A DNA stretch of 63,516 bases, filler included, from Bipalium vagum (taxonomy: Eukaryota), in assembly GCA_037834085.1 (NCBI GenBank). It is 3 parts of 3 records of this genome, joined end to end, with 100 filler letters (N's around TTAATTAATTAA, not from the genome) between each part and the next. Parts side by side here need not be neighbours in the genome. Positions count along the whole stretch, not along the records: positions 1 to 21,907 come from JBBMKC010229527.1; 2 more parts are not named here. The stretch is one strand, 5' to 3'. Below, one piece after another: positions 1,589 through 21,907 of this stretch (position 1 is the first letter of the stretch; each line of letters begins with the position of its first letter). Position numbers and translations under genes: made by a program. The notes under the pieces are model-generated. The model worked only from the letters and a program-made list of their open reading frames with translations. It ran no database searches and was not told the DNA's origin.

Positions 1589-3673
1589 TTATACTGATGT
1601 GTTGTCACCGTTTTCATAGGGTTTTTGCGGAATAAGAACATTTGGGATTTCTCCATTGTAGAAATTATGAGAAACAGCTGAAGAACCATTGTCAGACATT
1701 TTGAAAACATTTCTGGTTTGATTTGGATTAAATAGTAATTGAGAATTTGAAAAGAAAACTGAACTAGACCTATCTGACCCAAGCTTTAAATTATCAATGA
1801 AAGGTTGAGAATGTCTAGGAGAAAAAAATGTGGAATATATTGAATTCATATTGTCATTGTCATTATCATTTTGTCTTTGAAATGACATTAACATATTTCC
1901 ATGGAGAGGACAAGATGTACAATTATTTGACATTTGTTGTTTAGAAGATTGAATAAATAAATGATTTTCTTTCATTTTTTGAATAATTCTACTATTTTTC
2001 CTTGGAAGTGTGTGTGGTTGTATAATGTCAACAGTACTTCCATATTCCAGAGAAGTTTGTTTACTATTTGACAATGAAGAATGATCTATAAAATTGATAT
2101 TTCCATGTAAAGGACATGGAAAAGGACACGAATTGTTTATGATCGATCTGTTTTTTATTGGAATAACTAAGGAAGGCGATGATGATATAAGTAAACTTTT
2201 CCTTGTATCATTATTGTTAGTATATTTGTATAAATCTTCTTCAGTCTTTCTTTTTTCTTTATAGATCAAAGAATTCACCATTAATGGTCTTATTGAATTA
2301 TTATCGCTGTAATGACTTTCTCCATCATGAAAGGATGTTCTAGTACTTCTTTCAGTCTGATGAGTATTTGAACTTTTAGTTTGATTATGAAAAGGTCGGA
2401 TTTTAAAACCATATACACAGTAAATTGATATTCCAATAATAACAAGCAAAAGAATTAAAGTTATAGCACCAATGCCAATATATTTGAAGATAATTGTAAG
2501 ATCAATTACTGAAGAAAAATAATGCTTAACTCTTACTGAGAATGTTGCGTTTACTCTTTCTAGTTCAGTTATTAAAATACATCTCCATAATCCATTATCT
2601 TCAATTTCTGTTTTGGTAATCGAAAGCCAAGCTGTAAAGCGCATTCCAATTGTCTGACCCCATCGAATTCTTTTCCAATGTCTTTGAACCACCATACCAT
2701 TTTTAGACCACTCAATGCTTCCACCAGGATCAGCTTCAAATTCACACATTAAAGTAAGATTTTTACCTTGATCTATTTGAAGTTGTTGATTTTTTGTGAA
2801 AATCTTTGGAGGACAATAAAGATTATTAAGTTTAATATTTTCATATTCTGGAATTATCTCAAAAATATTGTGACCTGTAAAACGATGAGGAGTAAAACAG
2901 TGAGGTTGGGCAATTCCAATCTCACCATTAGCACGTTTGAATTTTTTTGATATTTTGACATATTTATATTTCATCCACCATTTTTTTAACCATTTCAGAT
3001 TGCAATCACACTTCCATCGATTTCCGTAAAGGAAAAGCTCAACAAGTTGCATATTATTTAGGGCTGATTGTATTGGTTTTTCTAAGGAGGATAAGTAGCT
3101 CATACTAAGATCTAAAGATTCTAGACTTGTTAAGCCAACTAAACTATTTGGTTCTAGATAAAATCCATTTGGAGCTTTGGACATTACTAGCTTTTGTAGA
3201 TTTTTCAAAGACTGAAAGAAAAAATCTGGCACATGTCCTAATGGGTTATTTTCTAGGTTCAATGTTTTCAAATTTTTTAACTGTAATAGAGCAGCAGAAG
3301 GAAATGAGTTTCCTCCAAGAATAAGAAGATTATTCTTCATACTGAGGTGTAACAATTTAGGAACATTGATAAATGCATCATTGTCTATTGATGATAATTT
3401 GTTTGTATCTAAATTCAAATCTTCAAGAAGTTCGACTTGGATTAATTGATCAGAAGTAAGGGAATAAATGTTCTGATTTTTAACTTCCAGTTTAACAATG
3501 AATTTTGGTAATTTCGAAGGAATTCTAGTGAACTTAGTTAATAAATTGTTACAGATACATTGCTTGCTCTCCGCGGCAATTATAATCGTTACGCAACCAA
3601 TTACGGATTCAGAAATCTTCGCTAAATTAAATAATCCAAAGGCAACAGCTATATATATTTTTATTGTAAACAT
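1589..3673 (-). CDS. Type I membrane protein with leucine-rich repeats, LRRCT, one Ig domain, TM helix and long cytoplasmic tail (LIG / Kekkon-LRIT-like)
   Basis: 694 aa single ORF: hydrophobic N-terminus, Cys-rich cap, LxxLxLxxNxL repeats, LRRCT NRWKCDCNLKWL, Ig domain (LTLMCEFEADPGGSIEWSKNG ... DNGLWRC), TM YIGIGAITLILLLVIIGISIYCV, C-terminal -TSV. Confidence 0.92.
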   Translation of the reverse strand: MFTIKIYIAVAFGLFNLAKISESVIGCVTIIIAAESKQCICNNLLTKFTRIPSKLPKFIVKLEVKNQNIYSLTSDQLIQVELLEDLNLDTNKLSSIDNDAFINVPKLLHLSMKNNLLILGGNSFPSAALLQLKNLKTLNLENNPLGHVPDFFFQSLKNLQKLVMSKAPNGFYLEPNSLVGLTSLESLDLSMSYLSSLEKPIQSALNNMQLVELFLYGNRWKCDCNLKWLKKWWMKYKYVKISKKFKRANGEIGIAQPHCFTPHRFTGHNIFEIIPEYENIKLNNLYCPPKIFTKNQQLQIDQGKNLTLMCEFEADPGGSIEWSKNGMVVQRHWKRIRWGQTIGMRFTAWLSITKTEIEDNGLWRCILITELERVNATFSVRVKHYFSSVIDLTIIFKYIGIGAITLILLLVIIGISIYCVYGFKIRPFHNQTKSSNTHQTERSTRTSFHDGESHYSDNNSIRPLMVNSLIYKEKRKTEEDLYKYTNNNDTRKSLLISSSPSLVIPIKNRSIINNSCPFPCPLHGNINFIDHSSLSNSKQTSLEYGSTVDIIQPHTLPRKNSRIIQKMKENHLFIQSSKQQMSNNCTSCPLHGNMLMSFQRQNDNDNDNMNSIYSTFFSPRHSQPFIDNLKLGSDRSSSVFFSNSQLLFNPNQTRNVFKMSDNGSSAVSHNFYNGEIPNVLIPQKPYENGDNTSV

Positions 3674-7744: not shown

Positions 7745-9410
7745 CAGTAACCGCTCGATATAGGCATGTTCTATATAAGCAAAGCTAAATTCGCTATAGC
7801 AATAAATTAAAATTTATTAATTTATTTATTAATAATTCTAAGTCTATTTAATTAATATTATTTTAATTTTAGTAACTTTATTTAACAATTTAAATTCAAA
7901 AGCTATGCAGAAAAATAAACGAAGCTCTATTTCTATGCCAGACAAGTTATCAATTTTAAAAGAGATTGAATGTGGGAACAAGCCAAACGATATATGTAAA
8001 AAATATTCTATCCATACATCTAGAATCAAGATTAATAAGGGAAATATTCATACTTTTGTGTCAAATAATTTGAAAGCTACGACTTTAATGAAACGAATGA
8101 AAGGCGCACAATATTCTGAATTAGAGAAAAGATCACACGCCTGGTTTGTAGATAGACGATCTTTGCACGACATAATAACTAATGATGTGCTAAAATTAAA
8201 GGCCTTAGACATAAATAAGTCTATGAATGGATCAGATGGTGTGCTTACAAAATTTTAAAATCGTTTTAGTATACCAATTTTGCAAATATCAGGTGAGAAA
8301 ATATCATGCAATGCCGAATCAGCCATTCTGTTTATAAATGACTTTAAAAAGATTATTTCAGAAAACGAATTTGTACCAGAATAGATATATAACTGTGATG
8401 AAACTGGTTTTAGTCTATAGAAGCCTGCACAACAAAACAAATGTTATCTATTTGAAAAAACTGCTGCAGGTAGGAAATTAATGAAAGACAGAGTCACAAT
8501 CATGCTATGTGTCAATGCTACGGGAACTCATAAACTAGAGTTGATGATGATAGGGAAATCCAAACATCCTCGGTGTTTCAAGAATAGTGACAAATCATCA
8601 AAAAATGCATGGTAAACAGCTGTACTATTTTTGGATTGGTTTCAAACAGAATTTATTCCACAAGTGATTTTTATTGTTGGACAACGCACATTGTCATGGC
8701 ACGGAGACTCTTCTTAATGTGGATAGCAGATTTAAGGTAATTTTTTTCCCGCCTAATAAAACTCATTTATTGCAGCCCCTTGATCAAAATGTTATCAAAT
8801 CATTCAAACAACGCTACAGAAAAAACGTACTTAATGAACTGGCTTCTTTGTCTGATGGAAAAGATTCAATTGTCTCCGCAATAAAAAATATTAATTTGAA
8901 AGACGTTATTTATTTAACTGTTCAAGCTTGGTTGAATGTGCCGCAATCAGTTATTCAGAATTCATTTAAACATCTGTTTAATTCAGTTGACGATATCCAA
9001 GGTAACAAATTAACGGAGTGCTTAATCGAAAATATTATAGATCCATAACCTAAACTATACAAGTTCATTTTCGGAGATAGTGTAATTACAGATGATGAAA
9101 TCTTAGACTGGGCTGAAGGGTCTCATGATACAACCATGAAATCAATCACAGAAACTGACGATGATAATTAAACGAGATGGGCGATGACTAAGAAAAAAAT
9201 TAACTCATTCAATACTGTTATAGAATGGGGTGAAAATAATAATATCTCGATCAATGAGGTGCTTTTATTGCGTAGAATTCGAGAGAAGGCTGTAGTGAAA
9301 AAATATTATATTAATTGCTAGTCTTATACGTGTTTTTTTAATTCAAAAATAAAAATTCGATATAAGCAATTTATTTGGTTCATTTTAATGCTTATATCGA
9401 GCGGTTACTG
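7745..9410 (+). mobile_element. Full-length Tigger/pogo DNA transposon with disrupted transposase
   Basis: 22-bp TIRs CAGTAACCGCTCGATATAGGCA / TGCTTATATCGAGCGGTTACTG (1 mismatch), TA on both flanks; CENP-B-type HTH ORF 7905-8258, YNCDETG, DRVTIMLCVNATGTHKL, LDNAHCH, FFPPNKTHLLQPLDQNVI; several stops/frameshifts. Confidence 0.95.
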
Positions 9411-9680: not shown

Positions 9681-12481
9681 CGCGAAATATTTATTTTACT
9701 CATAAGCTTAACCAAAGGTAAAGATTGTATTTCTTTGAAGATGTTAAAAGTATAACATTTATTATATTATATTATATAAATTTTATTAAAATATTATTTT
9801 TTTCTAAAAACATAATGAATTAAAATTTAGGCAATAATTATTATCATCAAATTTAACAATACAGAAATGTAGTTATTTAAAATATCTTTAAATCCTACAG
9901 TAGCAACCAATTTAAATAAAATCACCTGGTGTTTTCTTTATTACAATAAAGAAATGCTTCTTATTTATCAAAAGAAACTTTAATTTTGATTTTGATATTG
10001 AAAAAATAAAATCAGACGAAAATATAACTTCAACATATTTTTTACCTTATTTATTTTCTAGTGTAACCTTAAAATTAGGATCAACAGAAGTAGGAGGTTA
10101 AATATTAAGAGGTTGATCCTCACTGTTCGAAGGAAAATAAATATAAGTGTTAAGTTTTGAGATTGAGATGGAATGGGGTTTTAGATTAATACAGTGAGAA
10201 TTTAATCAAAACTTTATGTGGCTCGTTATAATTATTGAAATCAGAAGGATTTCGAGTGTGTTACGCTCGTGTTCAAATAAAAGAAAAATGAGTTTTTAAA
10301 TTATTTCTAATCGACTGGGTATTTAAATGATTGTGCTAATAAAAATCAAATCGAACTGATCAAAACACACAAATGGCAGATAAAACTTTAAAATAAAAAT
10401 TATTCGCTAAGACAATTCACTAATTTTATAAATATAAACAAATAAACAACATAGAGTTATTATATTGATAAATCCCGGAGAGATAAGGGAGAGAGAGATA
10501 AGAGCCCTCAAAAGAAACATGCGCCTCTCCGCCCTACTAGAAGTAGAGAAGGCAATAAAAAAGAAAATATGGGAAAAAACAAAAAAAATTTACTTTGATA
10601 ATGATAGAATAATTGGGGAACTATCCAATTATTCTATCCAAGTCTTTTTAAAGACTTTAAAGATTAATTAACAACCATAATATCCAATTTGGAATCGAAT
10701 TGTTATTTATGATTGAATAAATAAAATAATTACTATTGGAATTAATGGACACTGAAATAAGTGCTCGGATTTGCAATATTAACGAAATCTGTCTTCTTTA
10801 TATAACGAACCGGATTAAGTATTGATTATTGTGGATACTGGTACGAATAATTTGGTTTTGCAATAATAACAATATTTGTGTTTTTTAATATCCCAAAATC
10901 GGAATATGAATCAAATATTGGTTATCGTCGGTAAGTAGAATTTAATGTTCTTGAGTTTTCGTTGTTGATTTTCCTTTTTTCTTCTCCTTTTCTTATTTGA
11001 GATGGTCTTCTTTTATAGTACGTATTTCAGCAATTTGACACCGTCCTGTCAGAATTAGTTAATAAATTGATAAACCTCCTTGTGTTAACGTTGAAAATAT
11101 CTGCTTACAACGTGACAAACTATTCGTAATTTAATATCCAAATTTCAATTCTAATTAACAAATATCGAAGAATTTTCTTTTGCTTTGTGTCTCCGTTGTT
11201 TATAAAAATTTTTAATTTATATTAATATTTTTTACATATTTTTATTTATAGAAATATAAATTTACCATAATTATTTTTTATATATAATTTTTTTATTTTT
11301 TTATTTCGTTATTTAGTTAGTATTTTTATTTTTAGTAATTATTTTTATCATTATTTCTAAATTTATAATTATTTTAATTAATTTATTATTTCTATGAATC
11401 TTATTTATATTTTATTTATTTTTTCTCGGGATTTATCAATTATTTACACATAAACTTTATATCAAATAACATGCATAAGGTTTTGTAAAGAATTTACGTA
11501 ATAAAAGATTAAAGGATCACTAAATTTACAACATTGAATTAAAGTTTTGTACAAAATGTTAAAAGATTTGGATCACAAAACAATGATAAGTTTTTATTAA
11601 TTTTTGGATCAGTTCCTTTCTGCTTCCTTGCCTGGAAGTAGTCTCCACATAAGTAAGAGATCTATTTTCATTACATTTAGCCTATTTGTTAAAAAACCTT
11701 ATACTTCTTAATAACAAATAGAATTTTATTAAGAAATTCAAAAATACTATTAAAAACTAGGAAGTAAATATTCAAAATATATTCAAAAATAAGAATAACA
11801 TTTCCAATTTCGGTTTTCCATAAATAAAAGCTAAGATATCTTTTTAAGCTATTCTTTGCATCTACGGTCCAGTGAATGAGTCCCTTAAGTTTTTTTTTCG
11901 TCACTTTAACTTAAAAATTTTCAAAATTTTGTAAAAATCTTTTATTATAAGTACAATTTAAAAAAATTGCCTTCATTAATTTATTACGGATTAATATACT
12001 ACCAATTTAGTAAGAGACAGATATTGAATCTCTTCATTAATCATCCATCAGTATTCCAACAAATAAATAAAACAGTAGTAAAATTCTTAACATTATCAGT
12101 TTGTCTTGAATAGAGCTTAGTTCTTCAATGATTCATGCTCATGATGTCATTTATCGTTTCTTCCAGTTTGCAAAGTGCCAGATAACGAAAATCGGCAAAT
12201 TCTGTGTTGCTTCAAATATAAAATGGAATGCTGCATAATGGAAATTTCACAGAGATGTTGGGAAACCATCAGTGAACTTCTCCGACTTTCACAAAATTAA
12301 AGATTAAAATCTCAATGAAGATAAAAATCAATACTTGTCTGATGACGCTGATAAAGATCTTGACGACTGCGATGACGACCTGATCCAAAATGAAGATTAA
12401 AGAAAGCCATAATAGACGTACGTTTATGTGCATACGAATAAGTTCGTAAAAGAAGACTCTTTTTAAAATAAAATTTTGTAC

Positions 12482-12720
12482 GTTCGAATCCCGGTATCAC
12501 CAATTAATTTTTAACTGACATGGCGACCACATAAGGACACCAACCAGCGGACGTAGGCTCGTAAAAGAAAAGGAAAGGAAATAGAAGGAAGAAACTCGAG
12601 GCGGTTAAGGGCTTGGGTGTGAAGTAAAAGAGGATGGATCAGACTGAGCCTTAAAGGACTGAGATGTGAGATAAGTTGAAAATTAGTTGGGAGACGTAGC
12701 TCAGCGGTCAGAGTAGTCTA
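12482..12720 (+). mobile_element. Miniature non-autonomous LTR retrotransposon (TRIM) with tRNA-derived LTRs; both LTRs truncated inside the tRNA part
   Basis: B box GTTCGAATCC 12482-12491, acceptor-like TATCACCA, LTR end TGACA at 12520, PBS TGGCGACCACATAAGGAC 12521-12538, purine tract AAAGGACTGAGA, LTR start TGTGAGA at 12665, A box TAGCTCAGCGG 12697-12707; 12494-12516 and 12674-12695 are imperfect inverted repeats. Confidence 0.72.
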
Positions 12721-12949: not shown

Positions 12950-14824
12950 CTATGTTTTAGATCTTAACACGTGATCTCGATTTTTCTTGGCCCGCTCCAA
13001 AGTTTCTAGAGCAATACTTCGACTGCTACTGGAAATAACAGATTTCAAAGATGACATTTTACTTGTTATACTGTTACTACTAACAGCATCATAATCGACC
13101 GTCTTCATGTTTTTACTGTCGCCCATGTTCTGTTCATTAAAGTAACGTTGGAAAGTATAGTTTTTATCAGGATTTACATTGTAAGTTCTATTGTACCCTA
13201 CGTTACAATTCTGAGAGTAGTCATTCGGTTTAATCGACTGATAATTACACCCATCTTTGAGCTCTGTGTCATGAGAAGCTATTTCGTCTAATAACAAATT
13301 GTTATCGTAAGACGGTTTTCCAGCCGATTGGTTTTGCCAATTACAATGTTTTGGCTCTGGACTTCTAGAGTTACTTCTACTACGTCGTCCCACAATGGTG
13401 GAATTGCTGGAACTATAAACCGAAATGGGTGTCAATATGCTTTCGTTAGCTAAAGAAGGAGATTGGTTGCAATTGTTTCTGTTTTTTATATTCGATCCGT
13501 GAGAAATTTTCTTGTGGTGCTGGTTTTGGAATTTTTGATTGCGTTCTTGGTTCCTGGCTTCGTGTGTTTCTGAATCTCTATTCCTGTGCTGTCTACAACG
13601 CGGTCCGGAAATATCATTGAAATAATCTTTTAAATCCTTTTCCTCCGATTTTGTGAATATCTCACCCAAATGCTCTCTCGAAAAATGTGTTCCTCTTGCT
13701 CTCTGTCTATATTCTTGAGCCTTTTTCCGTAGATCCAGAATTTCCTTGAACCATTTTGACTGCTGGTTAGATTTTAGAGCTTCTTCTTGTTCCATGGTTT
13801 TTTGAATCATTGATTCGACCTTTTTCCACTTATTATCAAAATTCGCAGAATATTCCGTTAAGAATCGTTTCTGTTTACCGTGGGGAAAATTGAAACGTTG
13901 TGGATTTACCGTGTTCTGAGGTGGATATGTTTGCTCCTTAAATTTCATTGATGGCGGCGGCGTTACGGCTCGTCTTCTGATTTCTGGCTTCTCGGGTATT
14001 ACTTGAATTTGAGAATCCTCAAATGATCCTTTCATCAAAGGTTTCATTCTTTTTAATCGATTTTCGGCGACAAAATCATAAGGCCGATATTGTCTCTGAT
14101 ATTCCGAAATAAAATTGCTGTATATTTTCAATTTTGTATCAAATTTCGATAAATGATTACAATTTTTATCCGATTCCTTTGATGGTTTTTGGACCGCCGG
14201 TTCAGCCCAAGCGAATTTTGTTTGATAATCGGTTTTGCCAAACTCTCGAGATTTTTCATTGATGGAATTGTTTAAATAAGTTCTATATTTACTGTCAGCA
14301 ATAACTGTCTGGTCATTTGTTGTTTTCTTTTCATGTAGTTCTGGCACCTTTATATTTATCTGGGTTGACTTTTCTGATTTCTCATTCAATTTATTATATT
14401 TTGTTATTATACCATTTTCTGTTTGAATCGCTTCGTTGACGTACTTTTTAGGTTTTCTATTTTGAGGTTTATCAGTTTCAGATTTATTTTTAGAATACTT
14501 CATTACTGTTTCAGTATCATATTTTGCATTCTTTTTATTAAAATGTCTCTCCCTTTGTAGAGCCTTTATATTTCGATATGGAATACTGGAATCAAATTTC
14601 TTATTTTTATTACCCAAAACGAAATATGGATCTTCACTTATATTTGTATTATTTTGAGAAGTCAACGGTACACCGATCATTACATTGTCTTCTGGTAATT
14701 TAACTCTTCTTTTATGAGTCATAAATGGCTCAGAAAATTTTTGCTTTTCTTTATTTTTTCTTGCATAATATTCTATTTCGTGAGGATTCCATTGGTATGA
14801 TCGTTCATATTCACTTTTCATCAT
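12950..14824 (-). CDS. MDM1: MDM1-family microtubule-binding centriole/cilium protein
   Basis: 624 aa ORF with repeated (S/T)EY..(Y/F) motifs (SEYERSYQW, TDYQTKFAW, SEYQRQYRP, TEYSANF) and the MDM1-type segment WFKEILDLRKKAQEYRQRARGTHFSREHL; an acceptor-like TTTTAG directly precedes the ATG. Confidence 0.85.
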   Translation of the reverse strand: MMKSEYERSYQWNPHEIEYYARKNKEKQKFSEPFMTHKRRVKLPEDNVMIGVPLTSQNNTNISEDPYFVLGNKNKKFDSSIPYRNIKALQRERHFNKKNAKYDTETVMKYSKNKSETDKPQNRKPKKYVNEAIQTENGIITKYNKLNEKSEKSTQINIKVPELHEKKTTNDQTVIADSKYRTYLNNSINEKSREFGKTDYQTKFAWAEPAVQKPSKESDKNCNHLSKFDTKLKIYSNFISEYQRQYRPYDFVAENRLKRMKPLMKGSFEDSQIQVIPEKPEIRRRAVTPPPSMKFKEQTYPPQNTVNPQRFNFPHGKQKRFLTEYSANFDNKWKKVESMIQKTMEQEEALKSNQQSKWFKEILDLRKKAQEYRQRARGTHFSREHLGEIFTKSEEKDLKDYFNDISGPRCRQHRNRDSETHEARNQERNQKFQNQHHKKISHGSNIKNRNNCNQSPSLANESILTPISVYSSSNSTIVGRRSRSNSRSPEPKHCNWQNQSAGKPSYDNNLLLDEIASHDTELKDGCNYQSIKPNDYSQNCNVGYNRTYNVNPDKNYTFQRYFNEQNMGDSKNMKTVDYDAVSSNSITSKMSSLKSVISSSSRSIALETLERAKKNRDHVLRSKT

Positions 14825-16149
14825 CTAAAAGTAAAGAAAGTTGTTAAATTATAAATAAATAATGTTTCTATAGATATAACATCAATGATTTAATTCATTA
14901 ATTAAAACAAATCTAGGTTAATATATTATTTTTACGATTCATAAATAATTAAATAATAAAAATAATAAATTTAAAATATTAATTGAAATTTAATAAATAT
15001 TTATATATTAATATTTTTAGTTTTTTATAATCTCTTATTACTGAGAAAATATATTATTTAGAAAATTATTTTATATATTTTTTTAATTAAAATGATGACA
15101 TTTAATTCGATTTTTTATAAATTCTCATTGAAAAGCTTTTTATTCCTGATGAAATTTATTTTATTATTCTTTATCATTGGAAAATAATATAAAATAATTT
15201 AATAAAATAAAAATAACTTTTCAAAACATTCATCTAGAAATAAAAGCAATTAAATATAAGCTTAGAGTTACCCAATGGCTATCGCTTTGATAATTAGATT
15301 TCTTTGAATATGGTGTCATTGTATTACTGTGTTTAATGAATCTTCGCATCACCTTTCTGCAGCGTTTCCTGAGTTATTGTATTTGAAGCTGTTGACAAGC
15401 TTACTACGGCATTAATTCGTAACCGGGTCTGTCGGAACAATATAAATATTACTCTACTGTTGATTCTCTTTATAGATCTAGGAAATATGCTATCGATGAG
15501 TAACTATGTCTTCTGCAATGACACTTCGTTTCCTGATTGATATAATATGTACTATCGACTTTTCTGATGTTATCGAGAAACAATGCTGTGCACTCGTGTG
15601 TCATATCAATGAAAAAATTCTTTCAAATCTTGGATTCATACTTGTATGCTTATTTGCTATCAATGATGACTCAGTTGTACTCTCATGGAGATGAAGTTTT
15701 CCAGAAAATCTAGGACCTTGTCGTACCTCTCATAAAACACAGAGCTTCTTAACCGAAAGCAACATTGAACATTTCTATGAAAATACTTTCAAGAAAATAC
15801 TTTTTCATAAAAACTGGAATTGATATTCAATCAACTTTTACAAATATTACATTTATGAATAGCTTTAAAAATTGAAAATACCTAGGCCAATTATATAAAA
15901 ATCTTTAAATCCATTTAATAAAACAAACCCGGTGAACCAATTTGCAGACCTGGGTAGCGAATTTAGTTATAAACATTTAAAAATCTATGATGAAATAATA
16001 AAAATTATACTTCTTAGTGACATTTATATCAGTTGTAAAATTGTCAAAACTCATTTCTAAATATTTATTTTTAATAAGACAATAATTTTAAAAAATTAAT
16101 TATTTAGTTTAAATAATAAATTATTAAACTAATTTAAATTAATTTTAGT

Positions 16150-19100
16150 TTTTTAATCCTCACATTCACCTAAAGAATTTCTTGATCTTTTAAATGTTTT
16201 TGTCAACTTTCTTACCATCCGTATCTGACATCTAATAGAATCTGTAATGGGTCTTCTTTTTGATTTCAAAAGGTCAATCTAGATCTTTTGTTCTAATTTT
16301 TCTAACCATGACTACGTCTCCGACTGTAAACTTCATTCTGGTTTTTTGACTTCTCAACTCTCGTGATTATTGTTTGATTTTTTGAATGACTTTAGATTTA
16401 GTTATTTTGGAATATCTTGATTATTGTATTATCGTCTTGTCTCGTAACAGCGGAAAGTACTATGTACTAACTAATATGACCTAAAATTGCCAGGATATAT
16501 TTTTTATGAAAAGTTTCTTTTAATAGTCCACAAATATCCAGGTATACTTTTTCGAATGGCTGTACCAATGAAATTTTCACTGGGTTTTCCTTCATAGATA
16601 TTGTAACTGTCTTGAATGTTTGACACGTCTCGCAATATCTTATATTTTTGCAACTATACTACTCAAGCTTCATGGAAGAGAATTTGCGAAATATATTTCT
16701 TAATTTTTTCGAGCCCGCATGCGTTAATAGTTTGTGATTATGTCTGATGAGCTCTTGTTTCTTCTCCTGAAATATCCAGTTGTTATTGCTCATAGTGAGT
16801 ACAGTTTTGCTGGATAGTGTTTTCTCTACCGATGGCAATGTTTTTTTTATTTCCAGAATCTCCGGACTATTCCATATTCTTCACTGTCTTCACTCAACAT
16901 ACTTAAAATTCTCGTTTTTATCTTTCCCACTTTAGCATCTATGCTTGATATAAGGCATTGAGCACAGATTTCAAAGGATCTTTTCGACAACATGTCAGCA
17001 TTAGAATGGTCTGTATCTTTCCGATATTCTAGATTTAAGCCTAAACCACTCAAGTAATTTATCAAGGTCTGGAACAAAGCTGTAACTTGCTTCTTTGTTG
17101 TCAGCATGAACATTATAGTCTTGTGATCTGTTCTCAGCTTGAATTTTTTTTTATACTGGTTAAATATCGTATGATCCACAAGCTATTACTTTCCCCTTCC
17201 GTTTCCGTCTTTCAGCGATAACACATCTTCGATAGTATCAAAACTGAAATCTGTATCTAAGATGAATTCTTTTTTAAAACCTGGAAAATATAATATCGAT
17301 GACCTTGTAAGTGCTTCTTTCATCTCGACAAACGCCTTTTCACAGTTATCTAACCAGATTAACTTCTCATCTATTTTCCAGTAAATTATTTCTAGTGATC
17401 TTGATTTCTCCCAATATTCTTTGAAGAACTTCCTGTAATAGTTGCAGATGCTCAGAAAGCTGCACAGGCATTTGACGCATTTCGGCCTTTGAACTATTTA
17501 ATTCCTTCTTTTTACATTGGATCCGTTTCGATTTCGTCTTTGTTAATAATGTGACATAAAAATTTACCCTGGCTTTTCATAAGATGACTCTTTTCTGGAT
17601 TTATGCATATTCCCACTTCACAAATGTTGCTGAAATCATTATTTCAAATTTTGTAAAGTTTCTCAATATTTTTGGTGAACATCAGTATGTCATCCAGATA
17701 TACACATGCACCTTCCATCCCGTTGAGTACCTCAGTCAATAATTCTTGAAAGGTTCTCGGTGCTGCTGCTTTCCCGAAAGACATTCTGTTAAAACAATAT
17801 TGAGCTGATTTTGTAGATAATACTGTCTTTTCCTTTGATTCTTCTTTGATTTCGACCTTGTATTAGGCATTACCTAAATCAATATAGTTAAGATACCGAG
17901 CTCCCCCTGAGTTTATCTAATATTTCTTCTATGTTTGGCATCAAAAAAGCTTGTCTCTCAGTAATTGTACGCAATCTTCTGAAGTCTAAACACAATCGAA
18001 TATATTTTTACTACTTCTTTCACACACAAATAAGTGGCGCATTCCAAGGAGAATTGCACCTTCTTATGATTTTCTTTCTATACAGGTTTGTAATGGCCTT
18101 GTCTATTTTATTTTCTAAATGAACAAATTGTCTTCGTGATTTCACATTAATGTGGTTTCCTTTCGTCACAATCTTATGCTTTAACAGATTTAATAGACAT
18201 TGCTGCTATTCCTTATAATCTCTCCCAGCCTTTTGAGATTTGATATATTTAATATTTTTGCGGCCTTTTGAAATCTTTCAGCATCTGATATTTTTCTTCT
18301 AAACTCTGCTTCAATATCACAAAAGTCACTTTCCATTTTTTGTAGTTCTCTACACTCCCATTGTAAAACCAATTCGAACTGTTGTTGCGATTCCACATCT
18401 CACACTATGCTGGGTGTGATATGGTCAACTATCATGAAAGTAATTTTTTCATCTTGTCACCGATCACCACTTCTAATTCAGCTTTTCCTAGCAAGTCTAA
18501 CTTGCTCTCGTTTTTTCATCTTAATTTTTCATTACTTTTAACAATCTTTATATTTTGAAATAGTTCTGCGCTCATAACATTTATTTTTCTTCCTATGTCT
18601 AGGAGACAGTCCATTTCTATAACTTGTATTTTCAATGTGATACTCGGTCGTTCTTGTGTCTTATGGCAAACTATATTTGCATTTTTCAACTCGTCTATCG
18701 ACATTATCTTGATTGAGTTCACATCTTCTGTAGTCCCTCTCAAATTTTTCGTACATTTCAAATTGTTCATCCTTAAGAGTTTATACACTTTATCATTCCT
18801 TCGCTTCTCTTCTTCATGTCTTTCTTTTACATTTCCATGAAATATAATAGATATAGAACTGATACTACAATTATGGATAAGAGATTTACTGCTCTTCTCT
18901 AGAACACAGCTCCAACTAGCTCCCTATCTGTCGGAGCTCTTCCTTATGAGTGCATCTTGTAAGATACTTCATCATAATTATCATTAGTCGAGTGTCTTTC
19001 ACTGTCTTGGTCTCTGTTATCTGCAGATATTGTATTAAGAATACCTGCTATTATGAGGATAATTATACTGTAAGTTTGTGTCTCTATATGGTGTCCTCCT

Positions 19101-19500
19101 GTCTTCTCGACTTCTTTCTATATTCGTACGTAAATTGATTTTTTCTCTTATTAAAATTTCTGCTTCTGTTCCATCTAATGACATGTGCAGCATTCCTTTT
19201 TATTTATAATCCCACTTCTGTTTTTTATATAATCTTCTTTCTTTTCAAATTCTTAATATCTCTGAAGCCGCATAGATTCCAAATTTTCTCCACATACTAG
19301 ATTCTTTGAACTAGGTTAATCATTTGGAAGTAATTCGCATGAGAAACATCTTCGAGGGAAAGATATAGTATAATATATATATAATCTTTCCCAAAGAGCA
19401 GCAATTTTGATTAGCTTTCACACATTGACTATATTCGTAGAAATCCATACTTGCATTCATATTTCTTTTGAGTTATATAAAATTTCACATACATGCTTGA
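16150..19500 (-). mobile_element. Decayed Ty3/Gypsy LTR retrotransposon internal region (gag-PR-RT-RNaseH-IN)
   Basis: Protease-like DCLLDIG..INVMS (18516-18788), RT SPWNAPL and ACVYLDDILMF (YLDD at 17689-17700), RNase H EFILDTD and FKLRTDHK, integrase HKLLTHAG...CETCQ and PFEKVYLDICG; Gypsy domain order; many stops; no LTR pair recognised. Confidence 0.92.
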
Positions 19501-20105
19501 ATAATCACAACTAACAGGAATATATCCGCATTTTGATGTATGTATATTGGGTTGTTGAAGATAATATATCCCATTCTGCACTTCATTCATCCGTCACCTC
19601 ACTGATGAACCTGCATTTGTTTCCCGTCATAACTAGTTTTATTTTCCATAAAAATCACGATAAAAATTTTAGTCAAAACAAATATCGGAACTTGTATTAT
19701 TGATTATACATTTTCTTGCCTAATATATTGTCGTACTTAATATATTTTTTCTTAAACAAGTGAATCTTAAGAGGTTGATAAATTACTGAAGTTGGTTTAG
19801 TTTAAATATTTAGTATAAATAGAATATACGATTGAAAATTTTTAAAATTATTTAACACAAACTTTGATCACAAGACTTCCAAAAACGACCATTAAATATT
19901 TTTTATGAATAAATATTTTGGATTTATTAAAATTATTCATAATTTTATAAAAACTTAGCAATAATAATTAAAATACATTATTTAATTTATTAAAATAGAT
20001 AAAAAATATCAAGACATTGCATAAAAGCTGTTTATATTAAAAATAAACAATTTTTTCAATTTTCAAATAGATTCATACAAAAATTATATTCAATACAATT
20101 CACTC

Positions 20106-20588
20106 TTAATAAAAAATTCCAATCATGTTAGCTAAGTCACCAGAATGGTGCTTATGTTGCACACACAGACAGAACAATAACATAAAAATAAAGAAGCATA
20201 TTAAAATAATTGCAATCGGTACTATATATCCCCAAATTCCAGATTTCTTGTTCGAAAATATTTCGAACATATTTTCTTTATTTGGATACTTACAAGTCAT
20301 ATAAGTTTCATTTTCTCTAATATCTTCAAGGTATGGTGAGTCAATTTTAACACGGTAATTTTCTGCACAATTTGCAAAAAAGATGTGTGTTTCGTTGCAT
20401 AGAAATAAAATTTCCCTTTTAAGATAGGTTATTCTGATTTTGGATTGACGTAAATTATCCGAACATAACACATTTATTTGAAATCCTTCAAAAGGAGAAA
20501 CTTCATGAATTTCACGAATTTGAAAATTAAAAGAATAAATCCTGAGAACATTAATAATAAATATAATAACAATTTTCAGAAAATGCAT
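20106..20588 (-). CDS. Small orphan single-pass membrane protein
   Basis: 160 aa ORF with signal-peptide-like N-terminus, four-Cys ectodomain with N-glycosylation sequons (NET twice), TM IWGYIVPIAIILICFFIFMLLF and juxtamembrane CLC; TATA and CCAAT boxes upstream. Confidence 0.75.
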   Translation of the reverse strand: MHFLKIVIIFIINVLRIYSFNFQIREIHEVSPFEGFQINVLCSDNLRQSKIRITYLKREILFLCNETHIFFANCAENYRVKIDSPYLEDIRENETYMTCKYPNKENMFEIFSNKKSGIWGYIVPIAIILICFFIFMLLFCLCVQHKHHSGDLANMIGIFY

Positions 20589-20631
20589 TATTACAAGTTA
20601 AGATATTAGACTTTGGTACAGAACTTTGACT

Positions 20632-20729
20632 TTTTATATTTTTAATGTTACCTGGTTTGCATTGGTATTTTGATTATTTTTATAACTTCCTGTATTTTAA
20701 TAACATCCTGTATTTTAAACACATCCTGT
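20632..20729 (-). promoter_or_regulatory. Putative promoter: TATA box, CCAAT box and three ETS-like sites at 18-bp spacing
   Basis: Minus strand TATAAAA (20632-20638), CCAAT (20661-20665), ACAGGAAGT/ACAGGATGT at 20685-20693, 20703-20711 and 20721-20729, just upstream of the ATG at 20588. Confidence 0.5.
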
Positions 20730-21907
20730 GAACATGTGCTTGCATTTTTCTGATAATAATTTTTCAATAATCCAATTATTCATTCTAATTTTAATTCACA
20801 ATTGTAATATATTTTTATCATTAATTTTTTTTCTTATTATATTGCTTTCAATCATGAAATTTTTAGTTAATATTATTGCGAAAATTAATGACTATTTCAC
20901 ATTGGCTTAATATTTTACCATTCAGTTTCTCCTGATTAAAGGAATCATTGTAAGTTGAAAAAAAACTAATCTTTTTTATTTAAAACGAGATTGAAATAAT
21001 GTTACGAAGCCATTTGACAACAAGATAAGATTTCAAAATCAAAACCTAAAGGAAAAAATGCATTTTTTAATGAAAAATGCAAAACAAGTCTCAATACATA
21101 TCAATGATTGTACATTATTGTAATTGAACTCTATTCAGATTGAATTTAAATAAAATTTCTTTTTCATGATAATTATTATTGTGGCCAAAGGCGAACAAAC
21201 TGAGATTTAAACATTTAAAAATATTTCCTAATACTATTGTTTGATCACTGAAATTACATTACCGATGATCTCACCGATCTCTGATGCCCATAGGCCGAGT
21301 GACTCCAGCCTGGCACGTGAGATATAAATCATGAAGCTAGACTTCAAAGCTGATTTTGGGTAGTATTGTTAAAATAAAGAAAACCAAACAAACAACATAA
21401 ACCTTTAAAATATAATTTTTAAAAATATTTTTTCAATTTTATAGTTTTTTTATTATCTTAAAAATTGCATATTGTTACCAAACTAGTAATAATTACTTAA
21501 GCTTTAAGTCGCAATCTTTCCTCCATACTACCTGCTGGTGTTAACGATGAAAGAAAAATAATCAGTTCAACAATAAAATTTTATTAACACTGAAAAAATG
21601 ATTCTCACAATGTTAAATGTTCCATTATAATTAACTCAATAGCGATTCCCGTCTTGCTGATCAATTGTATCAAAATCAATTTATAACTTTCAACCAATAT
21701 CAAACAATGACCAAATTGATAAACTAAAAACACCAATCTATCAGATATCCAGATAGATATGATAAAAAAAATAAGGATAAAAATGAATTCATAATTTAAG
21801 TTGTGTATAACAGATCACTAAACAATTATGATTGATAGGTTGAATGGATTCTTCCCCTAAATTATTCATTAAATGCAAAACACTAAACTACTTTTTAAAA
21901 ACTGTTT

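Follow-up and report, generated by a model that had tools for sequence, protein, structure and literature searches.

In one stretch of the Bipalium vagum genome the 3' half of a tRNA lies upstream of a tRNA 5' half, and the question raised by this locus is how two parts of what looks like a single gene came to stand in the reverse order. We refer to the whole stretch of DNA that was analysed (63,516 nucleotides, filler included) as the window; it is AT-rich, with a G+C content of 28.4%. The original prediction, which was made from the sequence of the window, explained the permuted tRNA as a miniature LTR retroelement whose LTR is itself a tRNA-like Pol III gene. Our analysis supports this interpretation at the level of the family and adds the reason why only halves are present at this locus, namely a LINE that splits the 5' LTR and a truncation of the 3' LTR. 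The best explanation of the whole, which we hold with a probability of about 0.85, is that positions 12482-12717 are a dead and rearranged copy of an abundant non-autonomous TRIM of the Helenus/TRIMp3 class, with its 5' LTR split by an R2-superfamily LINE.

Each string quoted in the original prediction is present once in the window, at its predicted place or at most one base off, and the interval from the PBS to the purine tract in the window copy is 144 bp, the same figure as had been given. The motifs occur in this order:

12482-12502: 3' half of a tRNA
12513-12520: end of an LTR, ..AACTGACA
12521-12538: TGG-starting PBS, TGGCGACCACATAAGGAC
12653-12664: purine tract, AAAGGACTGAGA
12665-12675: start of an LTR, TGTGAGATAAG
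12690-12713: 5' half of a tRNA, including the A box

Neither ARAGORN nor Rfam returned anything usable as a tRNA in the window, which is expected because the halves are separated. They lie 168 bp apart and come from two different LTR copies, and the acceptor strands of the window copy have lost their pairing.

The window's own genome (440 Mb) was searched with a 261-bp stretch from this locus that included 12 nt of the adjoining LINE. The search gave 938 first-look candidates, a number far above chance, with the scored copies being 71-83% identical; the locus is clearly not single copy. Additionally, a 17-nt string spanning the junction of the LTR end and the PBS has at least 256 exact matches genome-wide and a 26-nt LTR 3' segment has at least 495, while the reversed control of each has none. 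Many copies possess another tRNA 5' half ~24 bp upstream and another 3' half ~24 bp downstream, and the complete unit therefore consists of a tRNA-like sequence, an interior and another tRNA-like sequence.

Six sister copies are structurally complete, measuring 343-362 bp each with a typical total of ~360 bp, and one of these natural copies (L024), not a consensus, served as the yardstick for our comparisons. The LTRs of the complete copies are 115 bp long, start with TGTGAG (TGTAAG in L018) and end with CTAACA. Their layout runs from the TG start through a 24-nt leader and a 72-nt tRNA-Ala-like cloverleaf to a T4-5 run, after which 9 nt with CA at their end complete the LTR. The first base of the PBS (TGGCGACCACACCAGGAC) comes directly after the 5' LTR, the interior comprises ~115 bp without coding capacity, and in all complete copies the last base of the purine tract (AAAGGAGGGGGA) stands directly before the second LTR. 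Thus the sister copies have the TG..CA LTRs, PBS, purine tract and duplication that define a TRIM, with the window copy retaining partial LTRs, and they bear out the prediction of two short LTRs that each contain a tRNA-like unit, with the PBS and the purine tract immediately adjacent to the 5' and the 3' LTR, respectively.

The target-site duplications, which had been expected at 4-5 bp, are 5 bp long. Perfect 5-bp direct repeats surround four of the six complete copies (L024, L029, L005 and L020), the duplications being ATAAC, TAGTT, CAAGA and ATAAT, and a further complete copy has repeats that agree at 4 of 5 positions. Three copies that carry the LINE have 5-bp duplications as well (AATAA, ATCTT and AGTGG at L033, L037 and L069). 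By our estimate a 5/5 duplication would arise by chance with a probability of ~0.002 (~0.2%) at the given base composition. The duplications enclose the whole two-LTR unit and not each 115-bp unit. In addition, both LTRs of a given element can have private variants in common, for example in L024 and L005, and the LTR pairs of L024 and L029 are 99.1% and 96.5% identical, respectively. Since most insertions are old, the two LTRs of an element usually resemble each other no more than they resemble the LTRs of other copies.

The tRNA-like nature of the LTR was evident when sister LTRs were scanned for tRNAs. The Rfam tRNA model aligns end to end to them with 29.5-48 bits against a threshold of 29, with 14 LTRs in 8 loci each giving one match that reaches the threshold. 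ARAGORN folds the LTRs into a cloverleaf with a 2-nt "anticodon" in a defective loop of 6 nt, so that the unit is to be classed as a tRNA-like pseudogene and not as a working tRNA. An alignment of 27 natural LTRs shows conservation of the A box (TAGCTCAGCGG), the B box (GGTTCGAATCC) and, 8 nt past the cloverleaf, a T4-T5 run. A G3:U70 pair in the acceptor stem is visible in the alignment and the loop retains a GC/CGC remnant; this pair, together with the anticodon remnant, points to a probable origin of the unit from tRNA-Ala.

These observations also dispose of the idea that the locus is a genuine circularly permuted tRNA gene that is processed via a circular intermediate. The order of the halves in the window is what such a gene would present, but these halves are 168 bp apart in two LTR copies of a decaying repeat, their acceptor strands are unpaired, the parent unit has a 6-nt anticodon loop, and hundreds of copies of the unit are not permuted. 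The structure of the family refutes this explanation, and we give it practically no credence.

A different challenge to the LTR interpretation comes from the ends of the 115-bp unit. The 24-nt leader and the 19-nt tail form imperfect inverted repeats of 19-24 bp (L024:1425-1539 and the 27 aligned LTRs). Pairing of leader and tail in an RNA would lengthen the acceptor stem by ~13 bp (fold MFE -36.2 kcal/mol, z -3.2), and one position of this helix changes from C:G in one subfamily to T:A in another, a pattern that selection on recognition of the ends by an integrase would also give. Long imperfect inverted termini would also fit a unit that is a tRNA-derived SINE or a MITE and often forms dimers or short tandem arrays, in which case the "PBS" and "purine tract" would be coincidental. 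Contig C7667 (C7667:50-301) has two LTR-end/PBS junctions on one strand with a spacing of 235 bp, and this pair hints at a tandem LTR-interior-LTR-interior array as described for some Helenus families. Such tandem hints can be read in favor of a SINE or MITE, but accepted Helenus families have been reported in tandem arrays as well (PMC10886601).

The anatomy of the element is also difficult to reconcile with coincidence, as the PBS starts exactly after CA and matches, over 17-18 nt, the 3' end of a host tRNA plus CCA, the purine tract directly abuts TG, the 5-bp duplications surround the two-LTR unit, private variants are common to the LTRs of an element, and a poly(A) or LINE-type tail is absent. 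SINE2 elements have a single tRNA head, a LINE-type or A-rich 3' tail and duplications of variable length, and have no LTR, PBS or purine tract. The present family has two LTRs, a PBS, a purine tract, a fixed 5-bp duplication and no A-tail, which places it outside SINE2. The two-LTR anatomy and the duplications around the whole unit lead us to reject both the SINE dimer and the MITE, which we consider highly improbable. None of the three findings named beforehand as evidence against the prediction was made: the family is not a single copy, it is neither a tandem tRNA gene array nor an ordinary SINE, and there is a host tRNA that matches the PBS.

With the complete TRIM as a guide, the parts of the window copy and of the repeat on its left can be assigned as follows:

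12161..12481, + strand: 3'-terminal 321 bp of a 5'-truncated R2-superfamily (RLE-type) LINE, inside the 5' LTR of the TRIM; a remnant of the C-terminal coding end and the 3' UTR
12482..12520, + strand: 3' segment of the 5' LTR (LTR positions 77-115, aligned to the LTR of the complete copy L024), with the remainder of box B and the T-arm, the acceptor 3' strand, a T5 run and the terminal ..CA
12521..12538, + strand: decayed PBS, 15/18 against the complement of the host tRNA-Arg(ACG) 3' end plus CCA
12539..12652, + strand: non-coding internal core of a longer "B" subfamily, 72-80% identical to the interiors of sister copies
12653..12664, + strand: decayed polypurine tract, with the family-typical form AAAGGAGGGGGA flush with the LTR start in complete copies
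12665..12717, + strand: 5' segment of the 3' LTR (aligned to LTR positions 1-53), with the TG start, the 24-nt leader, the acceptor 5' strand and the D-arm with its A box

There is no ORF in the core at 12539..12652. The 3' LTR of the window copy ends at position 53 with the remainder absent, and no further LTR pieces were found anywhere else in the window. Both outer LTR pieces are missing and the window copy has no target-site duplication. Its flanks are not repeat-derived on either side; the sequence from 12718 onward is unique in the genome, simple repeats aside. The copy is ~79% identical to L002, L003 and L004 and 72-73% identical to L024-type copies, and it is a member of an older subfamily with a longer core. 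It is an inert, LINE-disrupted relic.

Beyond the copy itself, the window contains an intact ORF of 694 aa at 1589-3673 on the minus strand that encodes a membrane protein with leucine-rich repeats and an Ig domain, for which there are only two close relatives (68-69% identity), from a read-set assembly and a metagenome collection. ORF fragments at 7905-9048 on the plus strand resemble by eye a pogo/Tigger-type DDE transposase, and those at 16847-17179 and 18516-18788, within 16847-18788 on the minus strand, resemble by eye the remnant of an LTR-retrotransposon pol gene. No flanking direct repeats of at least 60 bp were found in the interval 13000-21907.

The sequence immediately upstream of the window copy explains why its 5' LTR begins in the middle of the tRNA-like unit. 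Positions 12161-12481 belong to a different family of repeats, whose 267 first-look candidates end without exception at one and the same base. When a 5.8-kb copy of this family was compared with the window by blastn, the match began at 12161 with nothing before it. In every copy the 3' end of the repeat adjoins LTR position 77 (..GTAC|GTTCGAATCC..), and the LTR 5' piece is found 160 bp to 5.8 kb upstream of this 3' end, fused to the repeat at differing internal points. The combination of a constant 3' end with variable 5' truncation therefore identifies a non-LTR retrotransposon that inserts at a fixed target. The longest copies measure ~5.8 kb (L068, at L068:1616-7515, and L069, among LINE loci L032-L074), and the long copies encode RVT_1 (E 2.6e-16), with zf-RVT falling under Pfam's threshold. 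The reverse transcriptase aligns to solved R2 proteins (E ~1e-20), and the endonuclease region of R2 aligns (E 2e-6) to a C-terminal region in which D...D.K comes after a Cys/His motif. The RT is only ~32% identical to its best database relatives, and all of the LINE copies examined have broken frames.

The cut made by this LINE falls within box B. At least 199 exact LINE/LTR junctions at 76|77 are present genome-wide. Of the 111 LTR matches in the loci examined, 32 start at position 77, and 40 do so if positions 78 and 79 are included. The 5' pieces of split LTRs end variously between positions 51 and 73, which fits R2-type insertions that are accompanied by small target deletions. In a sample of 100 LTR 3' segments, 7 have the junction of one LINE subfamily and ~6 more are disrupted otherwise at the same site. 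At least two LINE subfamilies (ending ..TTTTGTAC and ..TTTTGTTC) use this site, with L012 (..ATTCTA) as a possible third. The 28S rRNA gene, the target of R2 proper, was not seen as an insertion site, since the 40 3' junctions examined all run into the LTR tail of the TRIM. The family of the flanking piece thus has the RT, the zinc-knuckle/endonuclease region and the fixed target of the R2 superfamily, and the LINE is a new target variant of a known RLE-type class.

How the LINE and the TRIM came to be joined in the window can be explained in two ways. In the history that we favor, the LINE would have cut a resident TRIM between LTR positions 76 and 77 and placed the 5'-truncated copy 12161-12481 in its 5' LTR. 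The upstream LTR piece would have been lost at or after this insertion and the 3' LTR would have been truncated past position 53. What appears as a permuted tRNA is therefore the distal part of a 5' LTR that the LINE has split and, further downstream, the proximal part of a truncated 3' LTR. Alternatively, the window piece may be one chimeric retrocopy, in which a LINE residing in a TRIM 5' LTR was transcribed through the downstream TRIM and reverse-transcribed at a new site (similar to 3' transduction), which would replace the insertion into a resident TRIM and the two deletions. The fact that both outer LTR pieces are missing and that neither flank is derived from a repeat is consistent with such an event, as is the presence of the same LINE subfamily at the 5' LTR of three B-subfamily copies (the window copy, L002 and L004) with differing truncation points. 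The LINE junction common to the top matches is partly a selection effect, however, because the query had 12 nt of LINE. Moreover, in L002 the LTR 5' piece is still present ahead of the LINE, which insertion in situ would predict, and the window copy lacks at its flanks the split tRNA-like target that the LINE uses in all other cases. We consider a chimeric retrocopy unlikely and retain the insertion of the LINE into a resident TRIM as the preferred history.

A primer for the TRIM was sought by scanning the genome with a pattern made from the complement of the PBS. This search recovered genuine host tRNA-Arg(ACG) genes (the gene at L083 has a T6 terminator). The typical PBS of the family matches the 3' end of this tRNA plus CCA at 17/18 positions, or 22/25 when extended, and one mismatch remains against the sole tRNA-Arg gene type found. 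A tRNA-Arg primer was therefore predicted correctly, with the exception that the isoacceptor is ACG and not TCG as had been proposed. The perfect 18-mer preceded by CA is present at 63 genomic sites, many of which sit on tiny contigs.

Two kinds of tRNA-Arg fusion were also observed in the genome. At L076 (~1498, minus strand), in the whole 252-bp contig L078 and also at L077 and L082, part or nearly all of a tRNA-Arg with its CCA is joined to the last 9 nt of the LTR and then to unrelated sequence. These 9 nt (TGTTAGTTG on the tRNA strand) equal the stretch from the T-run to the LTR end. The fragments look like integrated chimeras of the primer tRNA and a short minus-strand cDNA. The short contigs L079, L080 and L084 contain a common AT-rich sequence ending in ..AAATAAATTATT that is fused to the 3' part of tRNA-Arg(ACG) from the anticodon loop on, with the T-run flank of the gene kept. 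This sequence may represent a further site-specific element, one with genuine tRNA-Arg genes as its target.

As to how the TRIM would have been propagated, an autonomous LTR element would supply RT and integrase in trans, tRNA-Arg would prime the minus strand at the PBS, and the purine tract would prime the plus strand, steps that we infer from established LTR-element biology. The 5-bp duplication would then be made by the integrase. Transcription by Pol III would putatively start at the +1 position of the tRNA-like unit in the 5' LTR, read through the weak T4 run located there and stop at the T-run of the 3' LTR. Under this scheme the LTR has a predicted U3 of ~25 nt, an R of ~80 nt and a U5 of 9 nt. 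The T4 run 8 nt past the tRNA-like unit could equally end Pol III transcription before the PBS is reached. Pol III transcription is unproven in published Helenus elements, too (PMC10886601).

The genome contains at least 2155 integrase-core (rve) candidates, some within open frames of >1000 aa, and 36 matches to a BEL/Pao protease, all on contigs of <700 bp. The location of the BEL/Pao matches and of PBS sites on tiny contigs suggests that the assembly was broken by LTR elements that are young and nearly identical. No contig was common to the listed PBS sites and either the rve matches (150 scored of 2155) or the BEL/Pao protease matches (36). The original prediction had the family borrow the machinery of Gypsy elements; a Gypsy partner is unproven because the 5-bp duplication departs from the 4-bp, Gypsy-linked pattern of animal Helenus elements.

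Taken further, these observations allow a tentative scenario that goes well beyond the main reading and that we regard as rather unlikely in its entirety. The TRIM would represent a Helenus-type lineage that arose independently in a host group from which none is described, with a non-Gypsy partner (BEL/Pao or Copia, as hinted by the 5-bp duplication), and a specialised LINE of the R2 superfamily would use its tRNA-like box B as an exclusive insertion site. There would then be a chain of parasites in three tiers, with the LINE depending on the TRIM and the TRIM on an autonomous LTR element. The Pol III terminator would define the R/U5 border, and the chimeras of tRNA-Arg-CCA and a 9-nt U5 at L076 and L078 would represent strong-stop products that became integrated, a class of molecule once put forward as the precursor of SINEs.

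There are several reasons why such loci deserve recognition. Helenus-type units inflate predictions of tRNA genes, with at least 495 such units in this genome, and they can pass for permuted or split tRNA genes, so that recognizing them cleans annotation. An animal Helenus with another integration signature (5 bp) and another primer supports multiple origins and the switching of partners in TRIMp3. The specialisation of a LINE on the box B of a TRIM is the most interesting by-product of this analysis. The nested LINE indicates that an R2-type endonuclease can be retargeted to a site of 10-20 bp in the Pol III promoter of another mobile element, which bears on the evolution of target specificity in a protein family that is now used for site-specific insertion.

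For completeness, we compare the TRIM and its LINE with known systems. Helenus elements, defined as TRIMs with tRNA-derived LTR sequence (Kojima 2024, Biology 13:119, PMC10886601), were named in the original prediction as a precedent for the locus and have proved to be a real and fitting home for it. Together with Cassandra and Ajax they constitute TRIMp3, and Helenus elements are distributed among fungi, one plant and six animal phyla (PMC10886601); the host of the present family may belong to none of these phyla. The present family has A/B-box tRNA-derived sequence in each LTR, as the structural definition of Helenus/TRIMp3 demands, and on this structural evidence it is a member of an already described class. 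It resembles Helenus in having ~115-bp LTRs with a tRNA-like unit that keeps the A and B boxes and is unlikely to be a working tRNA, in having a PBS for the 3' end of a tRNA and a purine tract, and in its length, with ~360 bp falling within the 311-1263 bp reported (PMC10886601). Solo LTRs, hints of tandem arrangement and a copy number of hundreds or more are further points in common. There are also key differences. Published animal Helenus elements all have 4-bp duplications, and their PBS regions are held in common with Gypsy elements only (PMC10886601), whereas the duplication here is 5 bp, a departure in what is a descriptive trait of the animal elements. The primer here is tRNA-Arg(ACG), unlike the Arg(TCT), Lys, Leu or Trp primers of hymenopteran families (PMC10886601), and the LTR here is the dedicated target of a site-specific LINE. 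Five short motifs of the present TRIM do not co-occur in the sequence file of Kojima 2024, in which FASTA line breaks could hide matches. Cassandra and Ajax are alike in that a Pol III gene-type promoter is located within each LTR of a miniature non-autonomous element, but their promoters are derived from 5S and the present one from a tRNA, with Cassandra found in plants and Ajax in nemerteans.

The LINE, in turn, belongs among site-specific RLE-type elements such as R2 in 28S rDNA, NeSL-1_TV in tRNA-Pro, and the planarian LIN15_SM and LIN25_SM in tRNA-Arg and tRNA-Glu genes; RLE-type LINEs that insert in tRNA genes or in other transposons are already known. The family represented by 12161-12481 has the RT of the R2/NeSL group along with its C-terminal CCHC and PD-(D/E)xK-type endonuclease. 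It also has an exact 3' junction, 5' truncation, variable 5' junctions and a multicopy small-RNA-type target as members of that group do. Where it differs is in the target itself, which in all junctions examined is the tRNA-like box B in the LTR of a TRIM and not an rRNA or tRNA gene of the host.
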